45,640 bases of DNA from Ministeria vibrans ATCC 50519 (GCA_943704425.1 CALSCP010002524.1:1-45640), one strand, 5' to 3'; shown: positions 19,248 through 41,201, numbered from the stretch's first letter. Made by a program: numbers and translations. The notes: a model not told the origin generated them from the letters alone.

Positions 19248-22200
19248 TCACAACGACGAAATCCCGTCAATAATCTCCTTGCAAATGTCCTCGAGACCAA
19301 GTCCCGAGCACACCTTGGCGCCAAGCTGGATCAAAAAGTTGGCCACCGTCTGCATGAAGTTGTCAAAATTGAGCGAGACGGAGAACTTGAGGGGCTGTCC
19401 GAAGACGACCGCGTCCAGCGCCGCACTAATCGATCCCTTGAGCTTGCCCGGGTGCAACTCGAGGTTGAGGTTGAGATTTTTCAACTGAAACGCCGCCATA
19501 AAGCTATCAATGAGCTGGTCAACCAGACCGAAGCCCAGGTTGCCCGCGCCGCGTGCGAGATCAGTAGCCGCGTCGCAGAGAAAGAACCGAGCATCGCGGT
19601 ACAATGCCATTTGAGTGCGCGGCACATACGGATGGTCTAGTGGATCCAAGACCTCCATCACCGTCGTCTCTTCTTCCACGCCGCGTCGTCGTTGCGTCGC
19701 TTCCTCCTTCTTGGCAGCGCCCAATGCACAATGACCGCTGGTGGCCTCAATGCTCTTCAGCCACACACACTCGTTCGAGGCACAGTCGCGATCTTGAAGG
19801 CATGCCACACCAGCAGGCACTTCACCCGCCGCCCACCAACACCGACCGTCGCTGGTTCGGTTGCGCGGATCCGCCGGAGACGCACACCAATAGTGCCATT
19901 GACCGTCCTTAAACAGCCACTTCTCAGGGTCATGCGCGTTGTACGCTGCCACAAGTGCCGCACTCTGGCCAAGGAGCACTTGTTCCGCCAAAAGACGGTC
20001 TTCTTCCTCGAATCGCGCAATTGTCTCGTCACGATACGAAAGGTTTGCATCGGTCGCTTCGATATCAACTCGTTGCGGCATAGCACTGCGACGAAGAGTT
20101 GCCGTCTTCCTCTTGAGCATGCTCCGGGCCCCAACAGAGGTAGGCTGCGTCCTCGTGACGTCGTCAATTGGAACGTCCACCGTCTGCCGAGCGCGCAGTT
20201 CCTGGTACCGCTGCTCGGCATCAGCCGCCTCGCGCAACCACTCTACGTCCTCCGCTGGCAACACGTTGCGTCGACGAGGCTGCTTCGCGGGCTGCACAGA
20301 GCGCGCCTGGTCGTCTTCCAAGAGCCACGCCGACCTTCCACGCACTCCGCCGCGTTCATCCGTAGGCTCACTTTCACCCGCAGGTTCACTTTCACCGGCG
20401 GGTTCACGTCCGCTCCCAGGCTCACTCCCGCCCTCAGGTTCACTTCCACCCTCAGGCTCACTTCCACCCGCAGGTTCACGTCCGCCTTCAGGCTCACTTC
20501 CACTCGCAGGTTCACGTCCGCCTTCAGGCTCACTTCCACCCGCAGGTTCACTTCCACCCACAGGCTCACTTCCACCCGCAGGTTCACGTCCGCCTTCAGG
20601 CTCACTTCCACCCGCAGGTTCACTTCCACCCTCAGGCTCACTTCCACCCGCAGGTTCACGTCCGCCTTCAGGCTCACTTCCACCCTCAGACTCGGACTCG
20701 GACTCAGACTCATGTTCAAAGCCAGGTCTAGTCATGGGCTGCGAACCAGATTCCGATTCAGACTCGGGGCTACTCGAGTAGCCAACTCCAGGTACAAAAT
20801 TGTATCCCAATGGTGGTGTGTCAAAGTTCGCAATGGATCGACTGAGCTCAAATGCTCCGTCGTGGCGGCTTGGGAACTCACTAGCGACACCAAACCCATT
20901 AGACTGCGCCTTGCCCGCATACAAGACAGGCATGTCACTTGGATCGGCTGTGGTCGCACCGTGCAGCATCACCGCACCACGAGCCGACCAGAACACAACC
21001 GTGATCAGCGGCTTTTCGTAATGGTATGCCAGCAACAACAGCCAAGGAGCGCTACACTGCAGTTGCACACGAGTGCCACTCACAACGCCTACTTCGACAC
21101 ATCGAATGAAGCCGGTGTCGGTCGCCGGGGCGGCACCGCCCAGTGACACAGCGAGCGAGTACCACTCCAAATCCTTCGTATCATCGACACCCATCCCATG
21201 CGAAACGGCGAGAACCGCCCCATTTAGCTGATCAGCCGCACAGTTGTCGCACGTGAGGAAAATCACACCGAGGTCATTTGGCTCGTGCGATAGCGGCAGG
21301 TAAAACTGGAAAAGCACAAAGTCCGACGAGGTCACTCGGAATACGCCGGGCAGGCGTTCCTTCACACGAATGCTGTACAGTGCCTTGTTGCCACCATACG
21401 GCGTGGGAGTCCACTGCGACGAAAATCCCGACTCGTAGGTGGTTCCAGACACACCCGTTTGTTGCCAGAGCGCGTACGGTGGCGGGGGCGCACAAACGGC
21501 AGAACGAATGTGAAGGGCACATCGCTGCACCAGTGTCTCGTCGGCACCACGACTGCCCTCAACACACTGGCCCCGTTTGGCACGGTTGCATCGTGAGCCA
21601 ATCGGAATGTCGCCATGGCCGCTGTAGGGGCATACTCCTTCGGCGTCGGGCACCATGAACGATTCGGAACAAGACAAACGGCACACATCGGCGACGCACT
21701 GGGCCTCACCACGCGTTGCACGTTGGCATTGACTCGAGGAACTGCATGGGCTGCCAACGGGAAAATCGTGCTGCCCCGTGAACCTGCAGGCGCCATTCGC
21801 AAGCAGTTTTACGCTCGGATGTGCGCACTTGCCTTGACACGTTCCCTGCACACACTCCGCCAGACCTCGCTCGCGCGGAGTGCACTGAGAATCTTTGGAG
21901 CACATTGATCCCATGGGGAAATCTCCTTGGCCACGACGCAGACACTTGCCCGTCTCTGGATCGCGTAAAATGTCACTAAATAAACACTTCTCCAGGCACT
22001 TGCCCGAGTCACATTCGAACCGATATCCTTCCAATATTGACTGACGGCAATTTCGCGTTTCCAAACACGCTCCCAGCGGCGGCACATCCCAGTCACCACT
22101 CACATCACAAATGCCAAGCTCATTCACAGACACACCCGGCATAAAGCAGAACTGCTCACACACTCCCGTCTTGTTGCACTTGGCCGAGCCACCTCCGCGC

Positions 22201-25200
22201 GGAAGGCATTCGGCATCATCTGTGCACGCATGACCCTCCGGTAAATCTCCCAGACCACTGTAGGCACACTTGGTCACACCCTTGTCGGTCACAATCGCAA
22301 TGCTTGACAGACGGCACTCAGCAACGCACTTTTCGCTGTCGCATCGCGCCACTCCATTGACAGCAGGCAGACACTGGCTCGCCGTGCGACACCAGAAGCC
22401 AGGAGGGAAGTCGTGATTCCCGCGGTACTTGCACGAGGCGTCCGTTCGATGCGGCACCTCCGGTCTGATGCACTTTTCGACGCACGTTCGATGGAGGCAC
22501 TGCGTCGACCGACAGTGATGCGCCTTGGTGCAGTACATTCCATTGAGCACGTCCTGTTGCCCCGTGTACGGACACGTTTCGGTGGCCAATGCTACAGTCA
22601 GCGAAAACGGACACACCATCTCGCACTTGTTGTTTGCACAGCGCGCCATGCCATTGGCCGATGGGTGCGGCTTGCAATTGGCGTGGCTCTCGCATGCGTG
22701 TCCGCTTGGGAGATCAAAGACGCCCGTGAACTCGCATTGGCCGGTCGACGCAAGCACCTGAATAGAGCTGAGGGCGCACCGTTGCACACACACTCCTGCA
22801 CTGGTGCACTCTGCAACTCCATTGGGCACCGGCAGGCACTGCGATGAGTCAGTACCTATTCTCCAATTAAAAACAAAAAAAAACAAAACATTTTAACAGG
22901 TCAATAAAAAAACACAATTATTGTTTGACATACATTGATTGCCAGGAGGAATGTCTGCCTTGCCAACATAGCTGCACTTTCCCGCTGAGTTCAGTGTCGC
23001 TTGGGCAAATTCGCACACAAGTTGGCACTTAGACGAGACGCAACGACCGACCGTTGTGTCGCCGTCCTGGCAGTTTAAGTCCGTGTCACAGCCACCACCG
23101 GCAGGAATATCCCCGTTGCCAGTGAAATGACACTGCCCCGTGAAAACCATGCTGTTAGCTGTACATTCCTTCGGCATAAACAGTGCGAGACGAGGGTCGC
23201 TCAGCGAGCCCACAACCTCGTAGCGGTATGGTCCGTTCGCAACGCACTTCTCAATACACCGGCTCACCGGGGCAGTATTACCAGCGCACGGCGCAAAAGG
23301 CTTGCATACACTACCGGGCTGACAGTCATTCGATGACACGCAGGGAAAGCCCCCGCGAACGTCGTATGTGCCCTGGAACAAACACTTTCCATTGACCTTG
23401 TGATTTTCGTACGCCGTCATGAAGCACTCCTCAATACATTGTCCACCCACACACTTGGCGCGGTTCTGGCTCTGACCACGACAAGGTTTCGATGACGAAC
23501 AGCCATACTCGCCATAGTTCAGCGCACACTTGCCAAACACCTTCTTGTCGGCCACATCACAATGTTGTGACAGACACTGCACGTCAAGCGAACAGCCATA
23601 TCCAACCGGCGCGTTCCCGCTTCCGTACTTGCAGTAGCCTGTTGCATCAGGCTTGTCCTGGCTGTTGGGGCACTCTTGCTCGCAAATACGCTCCTCGAGC
23701 AAATCGGTGCGACCAGTCCGCGCAAAGCCATATCCATTGCCGGTGCACTTGCTACCCTGCTGACAGTAGCGCACGGGCACATTGGCCGACACGCGACACA
23801 CGTCACCGATGTGCCCTCGCGATGACGGCACCGTCGTTGCCCGACTTGCAGCAACAATCTCCGGCGACAGCGGATGCGCATACATGACCGTATCACCACT
23901 CGTGTGCATCCGATGGGCATTCAGCGACTCCTTTGGCGTGGCCGAGTCTTCGTTAAACTCGTACACAACGCGGCCGGTCGAGACGCCGTCCACATAGAAA
24001 TCCACAAAAGCTTCTTCGGCGTGCACGACGACGGCTACATGTTGCCACTGCACCTTGCTGCTGTCAGTAGGTACTCGCAGCACAGCAGTGTGCGCACTGT
24101 ACAGCGTAATCAAGTGCTGTGAGCAGAATCGCTGTCGCACTTGAGCAAATATGCGTCCGTCACACATCACTCCAAGAGCCACAGCGCCCACGGCGGTCGC
24201 CCTCTTGTTGCAGTTGTCTGTCGTGCCCTTTTTCGACATTGGGGACTTGTCTGCCTCGAGTGTCGCCGCCGACTGCATCTCGTGCCACAAAGGTGAGGCC
24301 GCAAGAATCGTGCGAGACGTGCCGCTGAGCGGGCAATCCGCCTCGTTCGCCTTCAGACGAGTCCACGCCATTAACGTCGCACCACGGTCAAGGACATCGT
24401 GCGAGGCGCCATGACTCTTCAGCATCCGGTCATTGGGCGCGTGTGCCTTGGCGGCCACAGACAAATACTCATAGCCACCCTCAAGGAAACCGCTGTAGCC
24501 GCGCGAGGCGTCACCCGAGCGCAGCCGCAGGGAGATTTTGGGACTGGTGGCTGTGCCACTCTCGCGGTATTTTACAACAGTATGAGTGGCCTTCCTTGCG
24601 CCAACGTGACGCTTCCGCACTCGGTTAATCGGCGGGGTGTTGTTCATGTTGATGATGGGAGCCGTGTTGCCCCCCCCCGTCGTTGTCGCGCTGCCTCCAG
24701 GCTTGGAGTTTGGCATGGGGATGCCCACACGCAAAGTCAGGTAGCGTTTCTTTGCTTGAATCGCCTTAAGAACGACACTCGTCACGTTGCAAGAACCCTG
24801 TACCTGCCCGATACCACTTGCGGGAGGAGTAAATGTGCAAATGGCCGTGGGGAACTTGGGGCGTACGAGCGGTGCACCTGTAGTGCTCTCAAGACTTCGC
24901 CAATTCTCGTACGCGACTTCAGCGGGCGACTCGTATACCTCGAGCGGGTCCGACGAAGACTCTGTCGAAATAGAAAAAAAAGCGCCCGCAAGATGATCAG
25001 CTTGCAGTACGGTCGCCTGCAGGTCAAACAAGAAGTAGCTCATTTCTTGCCAGTCTCGCAAGACACCGTTGCTCTTCAAACCCTCCCAGTCTGCGCTGTA
25101 ACCCAGTACAGCCTGACCATCGGCAATCGGAAATGCCGCGGAGACCTTGTAACCGTTTATTTCGCGCTGGCTCCAGAAAAAATCGTCCACTTCATCCTCG

Positions 25201-28200
25201 GACGCCTCCGCCGAGAGCATCGTTGTCCAGGAGCACGTCCAATCATTCTGTCCCTCCACTGAAAAGCTGAGCGGACGTTGCGCGCTACTAAACAGGCGCA
25301 GGCCAGTCACTCGAGTGGTCTTTGTAAAATGAATGGTCAGCGACGCAAATGTACACGTGGTGGTAGGCAACGCGTCTGTCAGAGCCGTCTTGCAATCGCT
25401 CGAAACACCGTTCGTCATCATTTGCTGGCCGGTCACGCTATGGATTGTTGCGCCCGTCGCGACTGCGTCACCCAGCAAAAATTGTATCTCTGACAGCTGC
25501 GCCACACCCTCGTCGATGCTTGTAAGTGTGTTGCCCACTTGCGACCGGAAGACGGTGATTCGAATCGCATCGACGTGGTTCAGCGAGGGATGCTGAGGCG
25601 CGCGCAACGGAAGCACCGGAGCCTCGTTGAGCTCGGGCTCGGTCACGCCAAGCGGCACGCGATTCGCCAGAATATCGTGGTCGTCGTGAAGCACGTGCCA
25701 GCGAGGGCGCACACTGCAGGCCGACTTGGCACGGCCAAGCAGCTTCCAACGTGCATTCGGCGCGGACGACAAGACAGCAAAGGCGCGCACTTCAAGGGCC
25801 TGTTGCAGACTCACTCGCACCGCATTCGTGTAGCCAATGGCGGGATAGGGTACAAAAGTGTTGGGGCTCACGTCAAAGCGCCATGTAATTTGTACCTTTG
25901 CGTTGGGGTTGGCGCCACTCCCATACACGGGAACAGAAAAGGAGTGTGACAACCCCGAAGTGGGCGCAAGCGTCACGGTCGAATAGCCATACATGTAGCC
26001 CTGACCTGTCTGTGTTTGATGAGTTGCGCACGTGGTGCCAGTGCCCTCGCACTCCCACACCTCTATGGCCAGTATCGCACCCGGTGAGACACTCGTCTTT
26101 ACGTGCTGCTCGTTCCATACGGGCGTGCTCTGCGCCACCTGTGTTGTCGACAAAAATATCTCTGTGTCGTCAATGAGCACACGAATGTAGGTGTCTGCCG
26201 TGGCCGGCAAACCCGTGCCCGAGTCAATAGTCAGCATGAGCGTCCCTTGTCCATGACCACTCGGCGTCCACGTACTTCCGCTGTTCTTGTCGCCAACAAA
26301 TGCGTGTGAAAAGCTCATACCAGCAGTACTGTACGCATCTCCATCGACATCCTTGTAGAGGTACACCTCGCTGAGGGGCGCATTGTTCAGAGCGACAATC
26401 ATTAGCTCGTCGTACTCGAGGGCCGAAAGACACGCCTCCCACTCGAGAACCACGCCCGTCTGCTTCATCACGCTCGTCGCACACCATTCAAATCCACGCC
26501 CAAGAGTAGTGCATCCTGTAAAGGGAGTCGCCTCAAACACAAACGGTATACATGCGCGCCCCGATATCGTCACTCGGTTGGGAACGTGCTCGCGTTCTCG
26601 GGCGTCGGCAAATTGGGCACGGACTTGGCGAGCCGAATGATCCGTGTAGGCGCCAAGCGACATGTCCAAACGGATGAGTGTTCGATAGTAGGAGATCCGT
26701 TGCAGAAGCATCATATGTGCCGGGACCTGCTTTCCACTACCCAAGGCGCTCATATCAACATATATCGTACTGTTCAGAAGTTTGTCCAGGTACGAAACGG
26801 CCGTCTCGGTCATGGCATTCTCGCATACAGCACGTTCACCTGCCTCGACATTATCGCAGTCAAGATGCTGGCGGGCAAGCTTTTGCAGAGCTTCGCCGAT
26901 GAGACCCCATCGGCAGTTGCGCAGGTGGGCCACCTGCTCGGGGAACGGATCAGCCGTGTGCAGCACTTCTGCAATTTTGTCGACAGCAACTGCATCCGCG
27001 TCTTCGACAACCATGGACGTCGCGTCATCACCAGCGGACTGACCGCGGCGGCGTCGTCGTCGTCGTCTTTCATTTGGACCATTATTCATCACATTATGAA
27101 TATGACTGGCGATCACGGCAATTATCTTTCCTTTTTCGCGCTTGAAATCGTCGATGTGAACTTGCGCCGAGATGAGCACACTCTCAGCTTCGTCAAGCTT
27201 TTTGATTTGACATGAATGATCGCACGAGGAGGATCCCCCAGCGTTTACCACGGCAGCAATGAGCGTCTTTCCTGAAGCAATGTCATTTCGGTACCGCGTC
27301 GAAAACTCCTCCAGTGAGGCCACGCGTTTTTCCACATCGAGGCGAAAATCTTCCAGCCGCGAGCGCATCACAGAGTTGCGAGCCCTGCAGATATCCATGT
27401 ATGAAAAACAGTTGGCCCCAAAGGCCTTAAACACGGACGTGATGGCGGCATTCGCAGCTTTACCAATCGCACTGCCCAGCTTGCTAAAGTCACCCGTCGC
27501 AATAAAATCATTCAAGCCTTTCACTGTCTCTGTGACCACCGCCTGAAAGCCCTGTAAGAGATGCATGCCGAATTGCACGATATTTTGCTCCAAGACCTTG
27601 AGACCGTTCTCAAAGGCGCTCGCAATGTCCTTGCCAAACTGGACGAGTGCTTTGGCGCCGTTGGCAAAAGCCTCGCCAACGTCATCAAAAAACTTATTAC
27701 AGTCCCTATTAGCCTGGTCCATCGCCTGGTTGAAGATATCTCCAGCCTGCCCCAGACGTAAGCGGATCTGCGAGAGGATTTTTTCCAGTTGCGAAGAGTT
27801 CACCGTCACGTCCACCGCAAAACTAGACTCTCTGATGGAGCCATACGCCGCCTCAACGCGCACAAAGGCCGACAGCACGTACAGGAAGGGAAGATTGTTA
27901 ATCTCGATCAGCGTGCGTTTCATATCCATCGACACAATCATCTCGGTGCACATGCCAAAAAGCTTGCCTGCCGCACTCGCATTCACCGACATCTCCTGAA
28001 TGGGGTTTTTCCCCTCCATCAGCGTCGCCATGGAAAAAACAAGGTTCGCAAAAAAGTAGGGCCCATTCTGGTCATCGGCACACGAGCGTTGCAAAGCAAG
28101 GACACCGCCCAGTTTAAAGGCATCCTTGAGCCAGATGTTCGCCTTGAATACGGCAGGGTCCGTTGGCGGTGGCATAATCACCACGTCGGCGCCTGCCTCA

Positions 28201-31200
28201 ATGTCCAGGATCTTAAGGTGTCCATAGAACTGGAATCCAAAAGGAATAAACTGTCCGCTCGGCGTTGTGTGGCCCGACGGGTTCGTCGTGAAGCTCAGGC
28301 GCGGGTTGCCTTGATCTTCGCCGGCCGAAGGACGTGGAAAGCCCGATGTGAGCAGGTCCTTGGGCACAAAATCGGCAATGTCATCAAACACATCGGCGGG
28401 AAGGAGCGTGCTGAAAATCTCTTCCATTGTCATGCCAAAGAGCGCGCCATAGAAGTAATTTTCGAGTGGATTGTTCGTATCCACCTGAACTTGGAGGCTA
28501 CCGCCAATGCAGCCGAGCTTTTCAACCAGCTGCATGGTATCCCCGACCTTCTCGGCGCACCCGACGCGTCCATAGCGTACCTCCGCACCAAGACCAAACG
28601 CCGAGACGGCTGCGGGACCCGACGAGGGCGCAACGGAGAGGGACAGTCGCGCGTTACCAAAGTAGAAGTTGGGGAGAAAGAATGCGTCAGGCCAAATGCC
28701 AATCATGGCAGCCTCAATTGTGAGCTGTCCTGTCGCCGTGATCGAAATGGTCGTCGTGAAGAGCAGCTTGTTGCCGGGACGGCACGTCGGTCCAGGTGGA
28801 ACGTCCTTGCCTAGGATACGTCCCATGTCGACCGCGAGCGCTGCGTGGAAGCCAAACTCCACTTTGGGCACAGATAACACGGCAAAGAACCCAATTTCAT
28901 CGAGACTGATCAAAGGACATTTGTCGGCGTCGCGAATCAACACGACACCTCCCAAGGACGCGCCAAACTCCATTGACGGCAACTCTCCCTCGAGGGGATT
29001 ACCAGGGTCGATGCTTGCGTACAGGAGGATGTAAATGTCGCCAAGGTTCTCGTTGATAAACTGGCACACTTCGTCACAGTCAGGGCTCGACAGTGGCGGC
29101 AGCGAGATGCTGAGAAACAGAGAGAAGCCTTGGGGGATGCGCGACGCGTGTGCATACGTCTTGAATGGGGGTCGCAGGTCGGGTGATGCCCGCAGGTCCT
29201 TGGCCTCCGCCGAGTAGGTAAACGCAACACGCACATCAACGCCCTTGGGCACAAACATGGCAAAAATCTTGCTAATCTCTTCGCCTGGAATCGCCGATGT
29301 CACCAAGTTGATCAGCTTGCCAATTTGCTTGAGGCTCACCTCGAGCGTGACCGCCATTGACTTGAACAGCTCGAGTGCACTGGAGCCCAGGCCGCGGCGA
29401 CGGTTTGTCTTCGTTGTTGCAGGTGGTGTCGCTGGCACAGAGACGCTGTTTTTAGGGTTGCGTTGGGACATGGTGAGGGCCAGGGGACAGGTGAATCCAA
29501 GGAATTCAATGGTCACCGATATCTTCAGAAATGCCTTTGACTTGCCCATTGGCGGATAAAACTTGATTGAGGGTGAGATGAACGTGATTGAACCAAGGAT
29601 ACGAAACAGACTATTGGCAACGTCATCTTCTGCCCAGCGGCCCTTTGCGTGTCCGCGGAAGGGGTCGAGACAATAATTGGGCAATATACCTGCCGTGCCG
29701 ACACTGACACTCTTCAAAGGCACGCACCAGCCATTGTCGAGCTTTTCAAGGCTCGTACATTCACGGCACAGTCCGTCGCGCGTCAGAAACTGGCCGATTG
29801 GACAGAATTCGCACTGGTCACCGTTGGAAGCGGAGCCGGGTGGACATCTGATGCAGTTGAATATTGGGTCGGTACGCACATCAAAGCGTCGACAGTGACC
29901 CTTTTCAACACAAGAACACTTGCCAGCAATCTCGTCGTCAGTCAAAATATTAGGATCAGTCATAGGGGACGAAGGGGTCGACGGCGTGACAACCGCTGAA
30001 TTTGGCACGCACGCCGTCTTGTCTGCGTTCGGTTTTTCGCCTGTTGGGCACGCCTTGCAGAAGCGACCCGAAAGCACCGAGCCTTTGGGACAAAGCTCAG
30101 CTGCATCCTTGAAGCATTTAGCAGGGAACTTCGTGTTCCCCAACCCCAACCCCTGCGGCATCGACCGTGGACAGTCAAGCAACTGCTTGGTGTCAGCCTT
30201 ACAGTAATAGTGTTTGGGGAGAACGTCAGTGGATTCGCATGTGCAGCCCACACCAGTGGCGTGCACTTTACTTGTCGGGGAAACCGTGGTACACGTAAAG
30301 TCGAAACAGCCATCGCGGTACGAGTTCAGCGCCTTGTCCTTGCATGAAATGCATTCTCGTGCCGTGGGCGACAAGAAGGAGCTCTTGTCACACCGCGACG
30401 AAGTAAAGCAACGGTCGCCATTGAAAGAAATGACAGATGGTTTCTTGCACTCGACACATGCAGTCCGCTCGAGATTCACTGCTTTCCCTTCCTCGCAGGG
30501 AGAACACGCCTTGTTGCCTTGCGTGAGGACCGCACCGGGCACACACACTTCGCAAATGTGCCCACTCGGCGCGCATCGCGCACATTGAGGAATATTGCAC
30601 TTGCTTGGCGGGTCGATGCACGCGCGCTTATCTTTCGACGGGACGAGACCGGATCCACATACTGTGCATGCGGTTCCCGCGTCGTCCACGGCTTCGTTCG
30701 TGCCCGTGCACTGAACACACGCTTCGGCGCTGAAGTCACGGTAGGCGCCATTCTGACACCGGTCACAACCAGTGTGGTCGGCGAGAGGGAAAAGCGGGCT
30801 CGGACACGCCACGCACTTGTCTCCCGTCGCACTCACAACCAGGTCACCCAAGCACTGCACGCATTCACCATCGACAAGAGCTTCATCAGCCCGGCTACAC
30901 GACTGACGCACACAGCGTCCGCCATCTGACGAGGCAATTAGATTTGCGGGGCACGTCTGACAACTCTTGCCGTCAACACTGACGACCGTGTTGCCAACGC
31001 ACTCCGAGCACTTGCCATTGGCGAGCGCATAGCCATAATGGCAACGAGTGCACTCCACGGGGGTCTTTTGTGTATCCACCTCGACACATCCAGGGAGGTT
31101 TGAATTGGCAGCTACGTCTGATACGCAGCTGTACTTCACCAAGGTCGTCTGAGAGGGGCATGCCACGCAGCCAGTGCCCTGCGAATTCACTGCTTGGCCT

Positions 31201-34200
31201 GATGGGCAATCCTTGCACTCGCCCTGGTCAAAATAATACCCAATACCACATCGCATGCAAATACTCCCGTCGGCGGCTCGCTTGAACGGTGCAGAACACG
31301 TCTCGCAGGCATTTCCTTGCCAATCAACAGCCTGCGTGCTGGAGCAAGCCTCGCACTGGGTCCCGGCCGAGTTGAGGAACTCGGGGCGCACGCACGTTTC
31401 GCAGCCACGCCCGTGGCGGTCGCGGACCGCTGGAGGCGTACACGAAATACACGACAGTCCGTCTGCGGCGGGAGTCTTGGGTGCGGGGCACTCGATACAG
31501 CCATTCTGAGCCGGGTCCAGGTAGAACCCATCCTTGCATAAGTATTTGGACGTGAGCTCCTCTTGCTCCTTCTTCACCTGCTTGGGATGCTCAAAAGTAC
31601 AAGTGCAACCCACAAGTCCGCCACACCGCGCATCACGATCAGCAAACTCATCGCGGTGTGAAACCGCCGCAATAAACTGTCGAATGCTGAGAGAGGGTAA
31701 TTCAACATAGGCCAACCAACGCATTTCACCCTGCACAGCAAACTTGGACCTCGCGGGGTCAGGGATGCAAGCACTGCCGTCCTGCGCCATCAATTCCCCG
31801 TCGGGACACACCTCATCAGCGGCAGCGGAACACGCATTGGCATTTGAAAGCATGCGCATCGTCCCAGGTGGACTGCACGCAACGCAAACATTGTCTGCAA
31901 CCATCTCGTTTGGCTTGCACACTGTGCCGGCCGACTCGCACGTCACGGTGCCCGCGTCGCGCACCTTGGCAACCAGCTGTGCATTACACGCAAACTCACA
32001 CGTATTAGCTGTGGAAGAGCGCTTCTGGCCCACGGGACAGGGCATGCACACACCGTTCTGCACTATCTTATTGGCATCACACACCTGACAGACAAAGCCA
32101 GACTTGTACTCGCCTTTGCTCTCGTCACAGGATTCACAGCCTGTACCGCTCTTGTTGGGGACCTTTGTGCTCGCGCATGCGACACACTGACCATTTGATT
32201 CATATTTGTTACCGATGCACTTCACACAGCGCGTTCCGCCCACGACGTTTTTATCGACTGGGCAGATCTTGCACGTTTTTCCGTCGTCATCTGTGTACTG
32301 CGACTTGGGACAAAAAGAGCAGGAGGTCAGACCTTCGGACAGGGCGGCCTTGCCTGGCGCACAGGGAATACAGTCCGTCAGACCAACTGCCGACGCGTAC
32401 GTGCCCTTCTTGCACTTTTTGCAGCCCACGGCACCTGATAAATCGTTGTACTGGCCCGCGGGACAGTTGATACAGCCGTTCCCAAGTGAATACTTTCCAG
32501 TCGGGCAATCGGTACATGATGCTGCGCGATGCTGACGATACTTTCCATCCGGACACTTCTCGCACTTGCCAGACTCCACGTTGCTTGCTACCTGGTTCTC
32601 TGGACACTCTATGCAAGATTTTCCACCCGGCGGTACAATTGAATGACTCCCACAGGAACTGCAGCGCACCGTACCACTCACCGACTCGTCGGGCATGGGC
32701 TTGTCGATCGGACAGGCTCGACATGCTGTGCCGTCGAGAGTGGAGTATTCGCCAGCGGTGCACGTTCGACATTGGCTGGCGCCGTCTGCGTCGGCGTACG
32801 TTCCAAATTCACAAGGAACACACGCAGACTCGCTTGTGGAGGCAGTTGCCGCAACGGCCTTGCCGGCAGAACAACGCTTGCACTGACTCGCTCCTTTTTC
32901 GTCTTGGTACTCACCAAATGCACACTGAGAACAAGAGACGCGCCCTACCGTGTTTGCAAACATGCCGGAGTTGCAAGGCTGGCACTCGGTAACGCCTCCC
33001 ATATTAGAGAAACGGCCAAGATCACACGTTTCACACGCACTGGCGCCCTCCTTCGCACCATACTGCCCCTTGGGACACGCGACGCAACTCGATGGGGATG
33101 TCGCTCCCACTTGTGTTGAAAACTTACCCTTGGCACACTCACTCACGCACTCGGTGGCGCCCACAGTGTCGCTGTAGCGACCTGCCTGACACGGCGTGCA
33201 ACTCTTGGCGCCACTGGATCCATCGTTAAACCTTCCAGCCACGCATGGTTTGCAGCTGCTTGCGCCGCTAAGAGAATATTTACCATTTGCGCACTTGACA
33301 CACTGCGCCTGGGCTGTACCGCCTGTTGTATCCAGGTAGGTACCTGCGTTGCAGGCACTGCACGTAGCGGTACCTGTCGAAGCGGCAAAGCGGCCCACAG
33401 CGCACATTTTGCAGGAGCTTGAGCCGGCAATGGGCGCGTACGTGCCAGGTGAGCATGCAACGCATGCGACATGGTCGGCAGTGCTTGTCTGTCCGATAGG
33501 GCAACTCTGGCACGTTCCTTCATTTTCATCAGGATTAAACTTGCCGTCGGCACACGGGACACATGACGCGCCACTCGGCTGCTCGCCCTTATTGCATCCT
33601 GTCTTGGTGGCACGTCGACTTCGCGCCTTTTCCCATTGTGCAATCGCCTCATCTTCAAGTGTGTTGTCGTCAACGTCGTAGAGAGCGGTGCCGTCGCTCA
33701 CCCCCTCTGTTGACGCCTTCTCAACTCCCACCTCGAGCTCTTCATAGGCACCAGTGTCCATTCGGCGGCGCATCTGTCCTGTAAGCATTCGATGTCGCTG
33801 CTCTTCGTCGTCGAGGAGCTGGTGCGAAAGAAGACGCGCTGATTCGGGAGTACCGTCGAAGCAGGTGATAAATGGGTTTTTGGAGTCACACACAGTCTGC
33901 TGCATGACCAAGAATGTGTCTCTGTCCACCGAGGTAACATAATCACGCGTGAAGCGCACTTCGTGGCCGTACAGTGGATGAAATGCCGCTGCGTCGTCTC
34001 GACGACGGTGACCCATACTTCCCTTTTTCGCCTGCAGCGTTTGCCACTCGCACTGGTCCATGCCGGCCGCATTAGAAACAAACTCTCGACCAACTCCGAG
34101 CGTGAATTGCAAGCCAACAAATTGAAAGCCGATTGAAACTTGGAGCGTAAAGTGAAAGGGCGTTGCGGCAGCCACCTCGTACTTCATCGTGGGTCGCTGT

Positions 34201-37200
34201 GACAGAGTGCACAAGTCGCGCCCTGGCGCAGCGGAATTAAGAATGTTGTTCCAGCCAACCGCAATTGTACATCCAGTGTATCCATGATATGCAACGGCAA
34301 GGACTCCATCAGGATCATCATAAAAGAGGTCGTTTCGCGTGGCAAATGTAAACTTCAAGTCAAACGTGAGGGTACTAGGTTTGAAAAATGTCGTGACAAA
34401 ATTCCGCACCGCCACTTTGGCCGTCGGCGGACCGGGAGTGGCTGGATCGCGACGGGAAAGACTGCCACGAGGCGTTGCATCAAGCAGCGGTGAGTTGTCG
34501 GAACGAATGGACAGCGCAAGCGCTCTGTGTTCTACATGATCACACAGCTCGCCGGTCCACAAGTGCGAGGAGCACCCACACTCAAAGCCAGTCGGCGAGC
34601 TTTCCGAATATCGACACTGACCTCCGTTGGCGCACGGCGACGAACGGCATGTGTCGGCCTCTGCATCACAAGTTGAGCCAGTGAAGGCGGCCGGACATGT
34701 ACAAAGAGGACCGGACTCGACCGAGTCACAGGTGCCGCCATGGGCGCAGGGTGACGAAAGACAGTAGTCGTGGGACGAGGCGCATGTTGAGCCGTAAAAG
34801 CCAGGTGCACACTCACATTCGTATGCACCTTCATCCGAGTCGTGCAAATGACACGTGCCATTGTTGCGGCACGGATTGACACGGCCACATAGTTGAGCGT
34901 GCTCAAGCGCAAGCTTTGCGCGCTCGTCAATCAACCACTCCATGAAGAATTGGCCGCGCAGAGACGCCAGGCGTGGTTCCATATCGTGAACATCGTCGTT
35001 GCTCCGCATTTGGTAGTACTCGTGTTCCAGTCGATAAATGTCTTCGGTAAGGCGCCGACGACGACCAACACTGAACGATTGGCCTCCGCCAATCGGCAGG
35101 AGTGTTGTGCGCCCATTGTTGATGTTGAAGGACAACGACTTGAAGCCCATGGTGATGAGGGGAATAGGCACAAAGTTCTCAACGCCGTCAATTGCATTGT
35201 TCGTCGCGTACTGGATGAGCGATGCGACCGACCAGGGGCACTTATTCATTGCTGATGCCTTTCGCGCGATAGTGAACTTTCCCAACAAACTCACATACCA
35301 GGTGAGTCCCGCACAGACAGACGCATCAGCTGGAGTGGTGCCGGCGAAGCTCAAATCCAAAACATTGTTGATATGGAAATACTGGACTGGCTGTGAGGGT
35401 GCTATCAGAGACATAGATTTCTCCAGGTCCGGATTGGACACGTCGACACCCATGGCCGCCCAGTCAATAGAGTTCTTAGCGTACGCGCCACGTCGACGGC
35501 CACCAGTCGTGGTTGCGGCGTCGGCAGTGTAGACAAAAGCAAAAGCGGACGGGCCCGGCTCGATGCCGGCGAGAAATTTGTCCAGGGATGGGAAGATGGG
35601 AAGGTCGGGGAAAGGCATGAAAGTGAGCAGGGGAAATCCAAGCAGATCGACGGCAAACTTGATCAAGGCCTTTCCCGTCAGCTTGGACTGAGCAAAAATC
35701 ACCACGGCATTCGGAACGGTTGTGGTCACTGCTGAAAACGATATGTCATTTGGATCGATTCCCTTGTACGTAGTTTCCAGCAGGTCGTTAAGGAACGCAA
35801 CCAGTTGACTTCGTGCGGCGGGCGCTTCGACAACCTGATCGACACCATCGAGTGCAGCGACACCCTTGCCAAGAACCATGTACAGCTGAGGATCAATGAC
35901 ACCTTGGCAGCGATCGTAGGCATCGGTGTCGCGCACAGCCTCGCTACACTTTTGAGTGTTGAGACATGGACCACTACCACAGGCACGCGTTTCACCGTCG
36001 ACTGTGTTGCACACGGCACTGTTGCTACCAGCAAGCAAAGTACGTTGGCGATCCTGAGTGCCACCACCGCAAGAAGCGGTACAGGCGCTCCACGAACCCC
36101 ACTGCTGCCAAGAGCACGATAGTTGAGCGCACGTCATGGTATTGCACGCCTGGGATTCCTGTCGCAAGGCAGTCATCGAGCATAGCGCACCTCCAAACGC
36201 TGCCGAGGGAAACTCGGTACGATAGCGACTCTGGATTCCGCCGTCGCACACTTCGGAGCAGGTCGACCAGGCGGACCAGGTCGAGAGCTTACAGTCGACA
36301 GGGCAGGGTGTGCCCACGCACGCTTTCGTCTCGCTGTTGACACCCGCACAGGGTGCTCCTCCGGGTTGAGCTGCGGTCGCCACGGAGCGAGTGCGAGTTG
36401 CGATACCACCCTGCCCGCATGCTGCGCTACATTGCCAATCGCTCCACTGCGACCAGGCACAGTCACCCGATCCCGGACAGGGAGGTCCGTTGCACAAGCG
36501 TGATTCAGATACACTGCCCGAGCATGGACGGCCGCCATGTTGAGCTGCTGTTGCATGACCGCGTGAACGGGTTTGCGTGCCGCCCGTGGCTGTACACACC
36601 TGTGTTGTGCACGCCGAAAAAGCCGACCAAGAGCCCCAGACGCAGTCAATAGGGCAAGGCATGCGATTACACGGTGCACTCTCGTGCGTTGGACCCACGC
36701 AGGGTTTCCCACCATACATATGTGCAGATTGTGGTCCACGCGTTCGCTCCATCGTACCCAACAAACCGCAGGAGGCGGTACACGGGCTCCAGGGCGTCCA
36801 GTCCGAGAGAACACAGTCGACAGGACACGCGATGGTATTGCACGGACGTGTTTCGCTGGATGCGCCCGAGCAGGGTTGGTTCGAATGGCGACCGTAAACG
36901 AGCACATGACGATGACGCATGTGCACGCCACCGCCGCATTCTACGGTGCACGCAGTGGACCAGCTAGACCAATCACTCCAGAGACATTTGCTCGGCGTAC
37001 ACGAGTGGGTGTTGCATGCTTGCGCTTCCGTTGTAGGAGATCCCAATGGACACGGAGTCGTTGAGGTGGTGAGAAACTGGCGCGTTCGCAGTGACGTGCC
37101 CGTTCCACATGACTTGGAGCACGCACTCCAGGCGCTCCAGGTAGTGAGCTGACAGTCGGGAGCAGAGCATAAGGGGGCCGAGAAGCAAGGTTCCATTTGA

Positions 37201-40200
37201 GTGGGTATCAAGCACGAAATAAGGTCCGTCTCGGGCGAGAGAGGGGCTCGCGGAACGGGCCAGCGGCGTTTTTTTGAATGATTATCACACAACTGACACG
37301 CAGTCGTGTCCCAGGCGGACCAGGTGCACGCGGACCAGGGACATACAAGTTGGTCTTTAAGATGCACCTCATATTGTAAGATGGGGCGGAGAAAGTGCCA
37401 TTGGGCGCGCTGGTTATAGATGTCGACAGAAGGCGGGTCGTGAGCAGTTGCGGCGAGTCGCACAATGAGCGGAGTGCTAATGGAGTAGAACAATGGCGAA
37501 GAGCACGCCATGCGTCCACGTGTGTACTTCATACGACACGCAATGGTTCTACCCTGAAGCACCTCCACCGTTGGTGGTTCGGTGTCCCAAGATGACTGGC
37601 CGTGAAGCACGAGTGTTACGGTGGTTTCTCCGCCAGAAGGCAGTTCTGTGCCGTGAAAGGCGAACGCGATGAACGCGCTCTGTGTCGGAGAAAGACGCAC
37701 CGTTGGCACAGGACCACTTTGCAATGCTCCAGTAATTCTCCCGATCGCTGTCACACACGGTGTTGTACAGGCGGCACCAGCGTATCCGGCTGGACACCCA
37801 CAAGTTGTTCCGGTGTGTGTGATGGGGCATTCACACGAGAATGAGGCAACCCCGTCGTGACACGTTCCCCCATTGACACATGGCGACGAGGCACACTCGT
37901 CAATGTTGACCTGACACATTGTGCCAGTAAAGCCCGCGTCGCACTCACACGGTCCGACCTCCGGAGATTCAACGTTAAGAACCAAGCACATACCGTTTGC
38001 ATAGAGGCAGCGTCCGAGCCCGTCGGGTGTGCGTTCACACGTGGCATCTTGTGTTCGACAGGGCGAGGGGACACAGGGATTGGGAATTTCGCAAACAGGC
38101 CCGTAGTGACTTGGGGGGCATCGGCACGTGAACGAATTGATACCATCGGTACAGGTGGCACCAGACATGCAGGGCGAGGATGCACATTCGTCAATGTTGA
38201 TATCGCATGTGATGCCCGTGTAACCATCGTAACAGGCGCAATGAAAGCCATTTACTCGGTCGTGACACAGTCCACTCAAGGTGTTGCAAGGGCTCGAGGC
38301 GCAATCGTCGATGTCGATGGAGCAGTGAGCGCCAGTGTAGCCTGGGTGGCACGCACACGAGAGTTCGGCTCCATCACTGGCACTCACTTTGCAGGTGCCT
38401 TTGGGAAAGTTACATAGAGCCTCGTTGGTGCCGTCAACGCAGTCAACACCGTTAAAACACGGATTGGGCTCGCAGTCGTTGACACGGCTGCAGTCGGCAC
38501 CTGAGAAGCCAAATGCACAGAAGCAGAAGACCGAGTTGATGCCGTCAACGCAAGTGCCATTGCCAGAACAAGAAGATGGGCTACAGTCGTTGATGTTCAC
38601 CTCGCAGTGCGAGCCTGTAAAACCCGTCTCACAAACGCACGTGTATGAATTGAGGCCATCGAGACAGGTACCACCGTTGTTGCAGGGTTTGTCGGCGCAG
38701 TCGTCAACATTGACACTGCAACTTGCGCCGCTATAGCCATGATCGCAGGTAAAGCGATCGACAACGACACGTACGTTGTCAATGCCCCAAAAGAGATCCT
38801 GACGGCCATTGACGACGCCCCAGCGCACGATAATGTGAGATGGAGCGAATGCTAGGTAGTCAGTGGAGACGGAGAAGCTCAAAGGCAACTGAAGTTTGCT
38901 TGACGAGAGCGTAAGGGCGCGTGTAAAGGTAATGCCGCCGTCAAATGACGTGTCGACGATACCATTCTGATAGGGGTCGGTCGTGTGGAAATGCGAGTCA
39001 AATGAGACGTGGACTAGAGCCGTGTAAGGGGGAAGCGCAATTTTTTCGGTGCGCAAGTAGGCGTTAAAGCTAACACTGCCTGTGAATGGGTTTTGCGAGA
39101 AGGCGTCGCGCAGAAGGTTCGGGTCAGCCACGGCAACAACATTGTTACTGGCGGCACTACTGGATGAGATGAGGTCGTCGTGGTGCATACTGGGCTTCTT
39201 TGAGTGCCACCAGTCGAGCGTCATAAAAGTCCAGCCGGAAAATTCCTTGCCGCCAAGTGATGAGTCGAGCTGGGGATCATACGTGTGCTTGTTGCTGAAC
39301 CCTAGTGGCGAAGTAGACGTCCAAACATTGTTGGAAGAGGTGGAAGCGGACAGGGGTGGCTGCAGCATGCTCGCGAGCGAATCGAAGTCTTGCTCGAACA
39401 CGAGCGTCGAGTAGCGCGTTCCGTGAGCAACATCGCACACTTTGGTGGGAAGCGGGTCGAAGGAATCACAGGCGTCGGAGGACTGAGCTGGAGTCGCGCA
39501 TGGGATGAACGCACACGTGTCCTTGGCAGTGGTACAGTCGGTGCCGGTGCGCCCGGACGGACATCGACACTGATGCCCGTACGAGTTGCTCTGACACGGC
39601 TCGTCCGATGCGCCACAAGCCGAGTGGCACTGGTCAATGCACTTCTCGGCGTCCGCTTTACCTTGGGTGTAGCGCCCCGCGGGACAGACGGTGCACACGC
39701 CGTTCTATGGAAGACAACAAGAGAGTCAACGACCGACGGTCTTTAACTCTTCTCGTTTTTCTTTGCTGTACCTGTGGAATTTTGTCGAGACCACATCCAT
39801 CGCAGCCGGTGGACTTCATTGCTTTGCCTGGCGGACACGAGGAGCACGCCGATAACGACGTGGAACCACTGGGCGAGTACTTGTCAATTGGACAAGAAAG
39901 GCACATATGAGCGCCACTGGACGGGCTGTATTTCGCTGAAGGACAAGGGCTACACTCGGTCGCGCCTGAACTACTCGCATAATGACCGGGCAAACAACTG
40001 CAGCGGAAGCGAAGAAAAGAGTAAAGGGGCAAAAGGGCGTAAATTGGAATAGTTATGAAATATCAATAATAATAATAATAATAATTATTATTATTATTAT
40101 TATTATTTTTTGGGTATTGATCAGGGGGGGAAAAGCATGTGTTCAGCATGTGTACCTTTGACAACTGGCAGAGCCTTTCTCGCCGGCGTAGGACCCCTTA

Positions 40201-41119
40201 GCTGCAAAAAGAATGCGCTTCATTACTTTTGTTCGTACGTCGTGTGTTGATAGTCATTCACTTACGACATGCAGAACACTTTGAGAAACCACCGAAGGCA
40301 AAGGTGCCAGCGGCGCACTTGTGAGGTTGGCCAAAGCCGGCTGGACACTCGTGCCCACTTGGGCACGGCAAGCACCCCGTGATGGTTGAAAAACTTCCAG
40401 CGGAGCACAGCAGACGTGTTGGGCGGTGAAGCGGACCTGAAGGAACGTCTCCACCGGCCCGCTCCCGCTCGCAACGGGCGCCGTCAAACATGGGCGGGCA
40501 GCGGCAGACGGGGTTGCCATCAACGACGACACACATGCCGTTGTTGAGGCACGGCTTGCGGATGCATTCATTCTTCTCAAAGCATGAGGGAGAGCTAACA
40601 GTCATTGCGACATTGCTCAACGAGAAGGCTACAGCAACAGAGAAAGGAAAAAAAAAGGTTTTTGGTGATTTGCGTTTGTGTGACACGGAAAGCCGTATCA
40701 AGGGCATGAGCACATGCACTGTGAATGAGACACAAGCCTCCCATGTCAATCGCGGGGGCGATCATACCTTCTGTGTGCCAGAGGTCGAAGGTGAGAGAAG
40801 TGGCGTTTGTGGGCAGCTGAACGACCAGTTGACGATGATGCAGGGCAGCGGCGGGGCCGTCAGCGCTAGTGTCGCTCGTGCCAGGGAGTACAAACAGAAA
40901 GACGCCAGATGGAGTCGCAATCGAGAGCGCGAAAGAGACGTCCGTCGCGTCGGATGAAAACGTTAGGGTGATAGTCCCCTCTTCCGGAACGCGCGACGAG
41001 ACAGAGTACTGGGGGAACTCCTCCGCGGAGCCCCCCGGGTGTTCATGGACTGTATCCCCGTCAGTTCCCGCGGAAGCGAACCCACCCAACAGACGCAGAG
41101 AGCTGGGGCGGGTGCGAAG
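19248..41119 (-). CDS. Giant (>=7,121 aa) probably secreted mosaic protein: EGF, GCC2/GCC3-type Cys-rich repeats, jelly-roll module, TSP1 x8, beta-rich scaffold, amphipathic helices, FN2, C2, discoidin-like, LamG, tandem 6-Cys repeat, EP-rich linker; 5' end unresolved
   Basis: Exons 41119-40768, 40628-40266, 40201-40156, 39997-39772, 39704-22934, 22855-19248 join in frame through GT-AG introns (21,366 nt), e.g. GNQ-C-TDSSQC across intron 22933-22856 and KIPQ-NGVCTVC across 39771-39705. No convincing start codon/signal peptide or C-terminal TM found. Confidence 0.85.
20364..20690 (-). repeat. 18-bp coding tandem repeat encoding GG(S/R)EP(E/A)
   Basis: Plus-strand units such as caggttcacttccaccct / caggttcacgtccgcctt; translation [26 protein letters not shown]... 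Confidence 0.95.
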
Positions 41120-41201
41120 CTGACAAACACATTTGGAAAACATTCCACAAAAAAAAAAAAAAAAAAAAAAACAAAAAAACAACAACAACAACAACAATCA
41201 A

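Follow-up and report, generated by a model that had tools for sequence, protein, structure and literature searches.

There is a giant gene on the minus strand of the 45,640-nucleotide stretch of Ministeria vibrans ATCC 50519 DNA (GCA_943704425.1 CALSCP010002524.1:1-45640) that was analysed here and is called the window throughout. It consists mainly of two large exons joined by one 78-nucleotide intron, as judged from open frames and translations. The encoded protein contains a conserved module that belongs to a so far undescribed protein family. In relatives the core, helical region and terminal motif of this module are continuous, but in the window gene they are interrupted by long cassettes of extracellular domains.

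The two large exons correspond to open frame A (positions 22896-39704, 5,603 codons) and open frame B (19251-22892), with a stop codon between them. They are expressed and spliced as one transcript. A 9.6-kb contig of run X1 connects position 22931 of the window with position 22852 and skips 22853-22930, a placement that is ambiguous by 3 nucleotides; the true GT..AG bounds are those given in Table 1. The intron is retained in DNA run X6, and contigs from the polyA RNA-seq run X5 cover the exons. In addition, the paralogue C2679 has a single unbroken frame across the site of this intron. The two big exons together encode 6,792 residues, which is a lower bound for the length of the protein. Several small 5' exons at 39705-41130 encode further cysteine (Cys) repeats and one EGF module.

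Pfam recognizes EGF modules, seven TSP1 domains and ephrin-receptor-like repeats in the window protein, along with weak fn2 and LamG signals. Between these modules lie five Cys-poor segments, designated S1 to S5 from the N-terminus to the C-terminus, in which Pfam finds no family. An initial annotation of this DNA, made from the sequence alone, had described the five segments, quoted peptides from them and placed them in one gene on the minus strand. All of these descriptions, including the positions of the motifs, agree with the present analysis. That annotation also proposed that the segments are pieces of one beta scaffold split by inserted cassettes, and that the motif run, a helical region and the terminal motif resemble an uncharacterised family in which these parts are contiguous.

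Such a family does exist. Searched exhaustively with HMMER, using window protein residues 3342-4102 as the query, 1.84 billion representatives yield 70 relatives at E <= 1e-3, of which the best reaches 9e-30. The named relatives come from the sponges Oscarella lobularis and O. pearsei, the choanoflagellate Didymoeca costata and the fungus Hyaloraphidium curvatum, and all of them are labelled uncharacterised or hypothetical; the remainder are metagenomic. Iterated profiles give a conserved core of 427 positions, of which the window protein aligns over positions 2-426. The profile alignment shows that this core carries the motifs IW..AFG, GN, NYFY, SGFP, IP.GF, GP and A.YG. The motif run that had been noted in the window (IW.DAF, GN, NYFYG, SGFP, IP.GF, GPY, AAYG) and the terminal motif are conserved signatures of the family. 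Also characteristic is the order of the parts that follow, in which the core is succeeded by a helical region and then by a terminal motif of three strands.

There is no Pfam family over the core in the window protein or its relatives, even at E <= 10 (20 family members scanned). A profile search of PDB sequences returns only coiled-coil matches, and these are to the helical region. The look-alikes of the relative P0039 and of S1 in the ESM Atlas are only unnamed bacterial clusters, all below 0.9, and literature searches found no description of the family.

Members of the family carry signal peptides. The same is true of C2679, in which a small upstream exon (68400-68500, minus strand) encodes the classical signal peptide MASSSVGPASLFLGLALLLSLLGSGVA. 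Since the window protein also has no membrane helix, these signal peptides point to a secreted protein. The partner domains found in relatives are F5/8 type C, HYR, PAN and EGF, which are extracellular binding modules.

The N-terminal regions differ greatly among relatives. Sponge and fungal members have a 600-residue N-terminal extension with internal repeats, the units of which match one another at hhalign probabilities of 95-99%. No hhalign similarity was found between this extension and the N-terminal regions of C1993, P0033 or P0055 or the window segments S1-S3. For the closest relatives, P0001, P0002 and P0004, the metagenomic contigs are short; they end in introns and provide no further upstream sequence.

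The first interruption affects the C-terminal part of the module. A profile of the terminal motif matches the window protein as well as C2679, C957, C1993 and C263, which are all five of the paralogues with data. The same profile matches the compact relatives P0039, P0064, P0025, P0022, P0004, P0007, P0001 and P0083 and the Oscarella proteins. In 14 compact relatives only 87-621 residues separate the core from the terminal motif, and the intervening stretch is helical. This distance rises to 2,476 residues in C2679, about 2,720 in the window protein and more than 3,500 in C1993. In the window protein it is made up of an ascending helical region of 414 residues and about 2,300 residues of cassettes, which include an R8 site, an fn2-like module, a discoidin/C2-like region, a LamG-like domain, about twenty 6-Cys repeats and acidic SEPEGG repeats. 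Core, helical hairpin and terminal motif thus form one module that is continuous in relatives and interrupted by cassettes in the window gene, and inserted extracellular cassettes separate the parts of the module in the paralogues as well.

Table 1. Features of the giant gene in the window
Feature	Position	Strand	Basis
Entire gene, resolved extent	19248..41130	-	Open frames, translations, collinear paralogues C2679/C1352, RNA contigs over exons
S1, 296-residue Cys-poor segment ending at a conserved RRRR site	35064..35951	-	
Three EGF modules between S1 and S2	34539..34892	-	Pfam EGF, sequence alignment
S2 + S2b, Cys-poor, with conserved motifs ..WNN.LNS.A.GRD.C.. and GLQF.LG.GREF	33570..34430	-	
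Inserted cassette 1, ephrin-receptor-like Cys-rich repeats	31752..33569	-	Pfam Ephrin_rec_like
S3, conserved Cys-free island between two Cys-repeat cassettes	31605..31751	-	Identity to paralogues
Inserted cassette 2, further Cys-rich repeats	29631..31604	-	Translation, Pfam, repeat matches of S2b profile
S4N, pre-core strands and one helix, conserved polybasic site NRRRG	29232..29630	-	Alignment with relatives
Conserved beta core (frame A residues 3492-3966; 427 profile positions)	27807..29231	-	
Ascending helical region after core, conserved Cys in MDQA..DC (27702-27704)	26565..27806	-	Translation, paralogues
Inserted cassettes between hairpin halves	19599..26564	-	Translations, Pfam
S5, descending helix (conserved Cys in ..FFLCDAA..) and three-strand terminal motif at the extreme C-terminus	19266..19598	-	Terminal-motif profile
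78-nucleotide GT..AG intron	22856..22933	-	Joins frames A and B in frame (..PPGNQC|TDSSQCLP..)

The second interruption lies upstream of the core, and the evidence for it comes from the metagenomic relative L027. This sequence combines P0007 (1,217 residues) with the preceding frame of 2,454 codons on one 16-kb contig with a GC content of 61%. In the region L027:335-11654 two genes were called, and the 300-nucleotide gap between them is spanned by the core, which indicates one giant family gene split by an intron. Its layout consists of EGF arrays, a weak S1-like stretch, further EGF modules, an S2-like stretch (1979-2061), and then the pre-core strands and the start of the core (2199-2405, BLAST 8e-8). 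L027 thus resembles the window protein in having EGF modules between its S1-like and S2-like stretches, and cassette 1 is not present between the S2-like stretch and the core. S2 matches L027 with a hidden Markov model i-E of 9e-5 (single target) and a Smith-Waterman score of 60, compared with 36.9 +/- 4.4 in shuffles, none of which (0/1,000) scored as high. The distance from S2 to the core is about 140 residues within one open frame of L027 versus about 1,490 in the window protein, where ephrin-like Cys repeats and S3 occupy the gap. Thus, S2, S4 and S5 are discontinuous relative to contiguous relatives. The pre-core strands, S4N, align with L027 in the BLAST match that includes the core start, and by eye with P0004, C1993 and C263.

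S1 and S3 are less clear. S1 matches L027 weakly at the expected place, with p about 0.05. There is no hhalign profile similarity between S1, S2 or S3 and the core, the N-terminal repeats of compact relatives or the contiguous N-terminus of C1993. S3 had been singled out as a short isolated piece of scaffold amid Cys-rich repeats, and it is indeed a genuine conserved Cys-free island, in which identity to the paralogues is 64/56% versus 30-54% in its flanks. In L027, C263 and C957 the pre-core segment is immediately preceded by an S3-like motif (a hydrophobic run followed by L/F-P-x-L/M-S/T-I/F-R/K). A profile of these three stretches has S3 as its sole match in frame A, with all scores at or below noise. 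It is plausible that S3 is a stranded piece of the module. The idea of one scaffold split by cassettes therefore holds for S2, S4 and S5, on the strength of L027 and the compact relatives, and finds weak support for S1 and S3.

There are at least six copies of the core in the 29.7-Mb genome. C2679, which is one frame of 6,505 codons, and C1352 are collinear with the window gene, including the cassettes, at 45-48% identity. C1993 (15877-32013, minus strand) is divergent and has an apple/PAN-like N-terminus, two EGF modules and about 900 Cys-poor residues that run unbroken into the core. C263 and C957 are intron-rich copies. Within this genome, S1 and S2 are confined to the three giant paralogues. 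There is an assembly gap (a run of N) within the S2 segment of C1352 (22950-23220), and this contig stops before the terminal motif.

Two further features are conserved among these copies. First, the Cys of the ascending helical region is kept in 6/6 paralogues and that of the descending helix (..CDAAVG; 19575-19577 of the window) in 5/5 paralogues with data. When mapped on the hairpin of P0039 the two residues lie at similar heights, and a disulphide staple is proposed on this basis. The conserved pair probably staples the base of the hairpin excursion. Second, polybasic sites of the convertase type (RRR, RRRR or R8) lie within, next to or at the termini of the Cys-poor scaffold segments, at 35301-35309, 34863-34874, 33810-33818, 29391-29399 and 27042-27065, and do not vary across the three giant paralogues. 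One of them, which precedes the core by about 55 residues, is also present in L027 (protein 2251-2254), C1993, P0004 and P0001.

In the Oscarella proteins P0084 (1065-1115) and P0087 (1050-1100) a small Cys-rich knot, CPGWNGCCW..CPGWNSCC, is located at the hairpin tip, the place where protist copies hold thousands of residues. In both proteins a GRRRR site and about 360 additional C-terminal residues follow the terminal motif.

The fold of the module was predicted with AlphaFold2 from P0039, a relative of 819 residues, using 58 sequences. The model has a predicted local distance difference test score (pLDDT) of 79 overall and above 90 in the core. It depicts a long all-beta antiparallel meander of about 45 amphipathic strands, each of 10-14 residues, with a few short helices, followed by a helical hairpin at 652-740 and a terminal motif of three strands at 742-789. 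Foldseek returns nothing from the PDB at E <= 0.001. Its weak rows comprise TonB-dependent receptors, LptD, ApoB100 (probability 0.89 and 0.75, E 0.013-0.016, TM-scores 0.17-0.20) and teneurin/Tc shells (probability 0.04-0.10). Both VIA-align lists, from a wide search and a second look, are headed by membrane beta-barrels aligned over 215-315 residues at a root-mean-square deviation (rmsd) of 6-9 A, with Z values of 9-11.4, a level that the tool itself describes as common for models that have no match. Twelve-strand porins align over residues 547-791 of P0039, covering the last core strands and the terminal strands. The stretch from residue 56 or 82 to 410-550 aligns to single beta-barrels, and because the equivalent of S4N lies inside these ranges, this part and the core seem to belong to one sheet. 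An arrangement of two barrel-like lobes, in which the chain end would complete the second, fits these alignments. A predicted complex of the window core and S5 gave an ipSAE of 0.02, a value that counts neither for nor against such pairing, given that ESMFold2 ignored the alignments. As modelled, the fold appears to match no characterised family.

The initial annotation had suggested a VPS13/AsmA-like lipid conduit or a membrane-attack scaffold, and no test supports a particular likeness to VPS13/ATG2/AsmA/TamB, to vitellogenin-like proteins or to pore-forming toxins. The Pfam scan of 20 family members contains no Chorein, AsmA, DUF490 or Vitellogenin family at E <= 10 and no match to MACPF, aerolysin or Tc. 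In neither VIA list do the top 50 rows include a chain from VPS13/ATG2/TamB, a vitellogenin or a pore-forming toxin (MACPF, aerolysin and Tc proteins among them), and no such chain passes the Foldseek threshold. The more general notion of a repeating beta scaffold is upheld in part. An amphipathic all-beta meander is predicted by the model and repeats occur within the N-terminal extension of the sponge and fungal relatives, but the order of strands and helices in P0039 shows no five-strand-plus-loop periodicity. The pattern of the short amphipathic helix noted in the Cys-poor segments, h-[STN]-h-xx-hh-xx-h, does not exceed its chance frequency, with 7 occurrences versus 6.7 +/- 2.7 in shuffles.

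We favour an explanation, with a probability of roughly 60%, in which the giant protein is a secreted mosaic of the adhesion type built around one undescribed module that would act as a hub binding a hydrophobic partner, with cassettes nested in two loops of this module. The module would comprise the pre-core strands, the beta core of about 430 residues, the helical hairpin and the three terminal beta strands. In the window protein and its two close paralogues, one interruption consists of about 2,300 residues of binding-type domains that separate the ascending arm of the hairpin from the descending one, and the other of about 1,300 residues of Cys-rich repeats between S2 and the pre-core strands. 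Judging from the P0039 model, the module may fold as large, strongly curved antiparallel sheets, and the C-terminal strands may complete the last lobe and so bring the chain end back to the hub. Perhaps the module serves as a rigid hub and the hairpin as a stalk, which together would display two long arms of adhesion domains. Binding of a hydrophobic partner is the most likely function of the hub, in which case its hydrophobic sheet face might contact lipid, a membrane or another copy of the protein.

Several observations weigh against this explanation. Every functional statement about the hub is inferred, as is the disulphide staple. The match of S2 comes from one metagenomic contig, and S1 and S3 have no significant similarity to any contiguous relative. 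An AlphaFold2 prediction of S1, the three EGF modules, S2 and S2b, based on three sequences, reaches a pLDDT of 36, with S1 showing mixed alpha/beta secondary structure at low confidence. The terminal strands of P0039 have a pLDDT of only 50-74 and their pairing is predicted. Finally, no signal peptide or first exon of the window gene's own was found.

Perhaps the protein is instead an ordinary mosaic with one nested insertion, in which only the core, hairpin and terminal motif constitute the module and S1, S2/S2b and S3 are independent lineage-specific domains or linkers. This is a possible, if unlikely, alternative. It would account for the lack of profile similarity between S1-S3 and either the core or the N-terminal repeats of compact relatives, for a helix pattern at chance level, for the mixed alpha/beta character of S1 and for the high variability of N-terminal regions among relatives. 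However, the stretch of L027 that S2 significantly resembles directly precedes the pre-core strands, the N-terminal strands appear to lie in one sheet with the core in the P0039 model, and the conservation of S3 exceeds that of its flanks.

A more far-reaching proposal, and one that we regard as doubtful, is that the module is a secreted amphipathic beta-barrel or beta-taco of a new eukaryotic class, which is conserved in fungi, choanoflagellates and sponges and binds lipid membranes or inserts into them. Segments separated by thousands of residues would come together in its fold, and strand completion together with the disulphide staple would hold the protein together after convertase cleavage at the polybasic sites. 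The best structural neighbours of the P0039 model are indeed transmembrane beta-barrels (DcaP/OprB, VDAC/Tom40, BamA/Sam50 and TonB-dependent receptors, with NanC/KdgM for the last lobe), and the model shares with them long antiparallel up-and-down strands, barrel-like curvature and alternating hydrophobic and polar residues. Unlike these barrels, the module has no sequence similarity to them, aligns only at the large rmsd given above, is eukaryotic, is accompanied by signal peptides, and contains a helical hairpin and short intervening helices. It is unlikely that the module is located in a membrane.

Readings in which the protein conducts lipid or attacks membranes are speculation. In the first of these, which seems quite improbable, S1-S5 would all form one continuous sheet of the VPS13/AsmA repeating-beta-groove (RBG) type, or a vitellogenin-like cavity, that extracts or channels lipid extracellularly. 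The long amphipathic strands and short helices of the P0039 model, the weak ApoB100 rows, the repetitive N-terminal extension and the preservation of the order S2-S3-S4 in relatives are all in keeping with such a sheet. Yet the relevant Pfam families are missing even at the permissive threshold, no RBG or vitellogenin-type chain appears in the upper rows of the VIA lists, and the five-strand-plus-loop periodicity is lacking. Moreover, the beta-amphipathic moment of S1 is low (that of S1 and S2b does not exceed that of ordinary domains in the same protein), and there is no relative in which S1 is contiguous to the core.

The RBG lipid transfer proteins (VPS13, ATG2, AsmA/TamB/YhdP) resemble the module in its very long amphipathic beta sheet, which is possibly built from repeats. 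However, the module shows neither their family signature nor a structural match nor their five-strand periodicity, and it is extracellular whereas RBG proteins are intracellular or periplasmic. The large lipid transfer proteins (vitellogenin, ApoB, MTP) are, like the module, secreted and endowed with large amphipathic sheets, and ApoB100 is among the weak Foldseek rows. In contrast to them, the module matches no Vitellogenin_N or open-beta-sheet family, and the TM-scores of those rows are very low.

It is very improbable that the module inserts into membranes as a pore. In such a mechanism its barrel-like lobes would enter the membrane of a target once the polybasic sites had been cut, and the cassettes would aim the protein at prey. 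All structural neighbours being transmembrane beta-barrels, the conserved polybasic sites inside or beside scaffold segments, and the secretion of these proteins without a membrane helix would agree with this idea. The similarity to barrels is nevertheless of the strength that is common for this tool and at a large rmsd, no pore-forming family is matched, and many charges lie on the strand faces. In addition, the family has members in sponges and in a saprotrophic fungus, organisms in which an attack on prey would not be expected. An artefact, namely a chimeric gene model or a pseudogene whose terminal motif is really part of a different gene, might be suspected from the stop codon between frames A and B and the unfixed 5' end, but is extremely unlikely because the transcript contig lacks exactly the 78-nucleotide intron with the frame kept, a single frame spans the junction in C2679, and the terminal motif lies at the end of five paralogues.

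Within the favoured explanation of a hub with nested adhesion cassettes, the closest architectural parallels are the L4 domains placed in LE modules of laminin and perlecan and the alpha-I domain placed in the integrin propeller. In these proteins, as in the window protein, folded domains occupy a loop of a host, whose own segments come to lie far apart. Unlike in those cases, the host module here is unnamed, the insert of about 2,300-3,500 residues comprises dozens of domains and is located in a helical hairpin, and there is a second insert of about 1,300 residues upstream. A host module that tolerates inserts of such extreme size is a natural system for the assembly of giant mosaic adhesion proteins.

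The module is a conserved extracellular unit that is missing from Pfam and from the solved structures that were searched. Its family spans opisthokonts that are relevant to the origin of animal cell adhesion, namely a sponge, a choanoflagellate, an early fungus and an animal-related protist. If the hub binds lipid or membrane, it would represent a new structural class of extracellular lipid-binding protein. At 800-1,800 residues, the compact relatives are amenable to expression and structural studies.

A PX-domain gene ends just upstream of the giant gene, at about 41205. Long AAT/ATT microsatellite and poly-T tracts are found in introns of the giant gene and upstream of it (40060-40130, 41140-41200), and similar simple repeats fill the introns of the paralogues C263 and C957.

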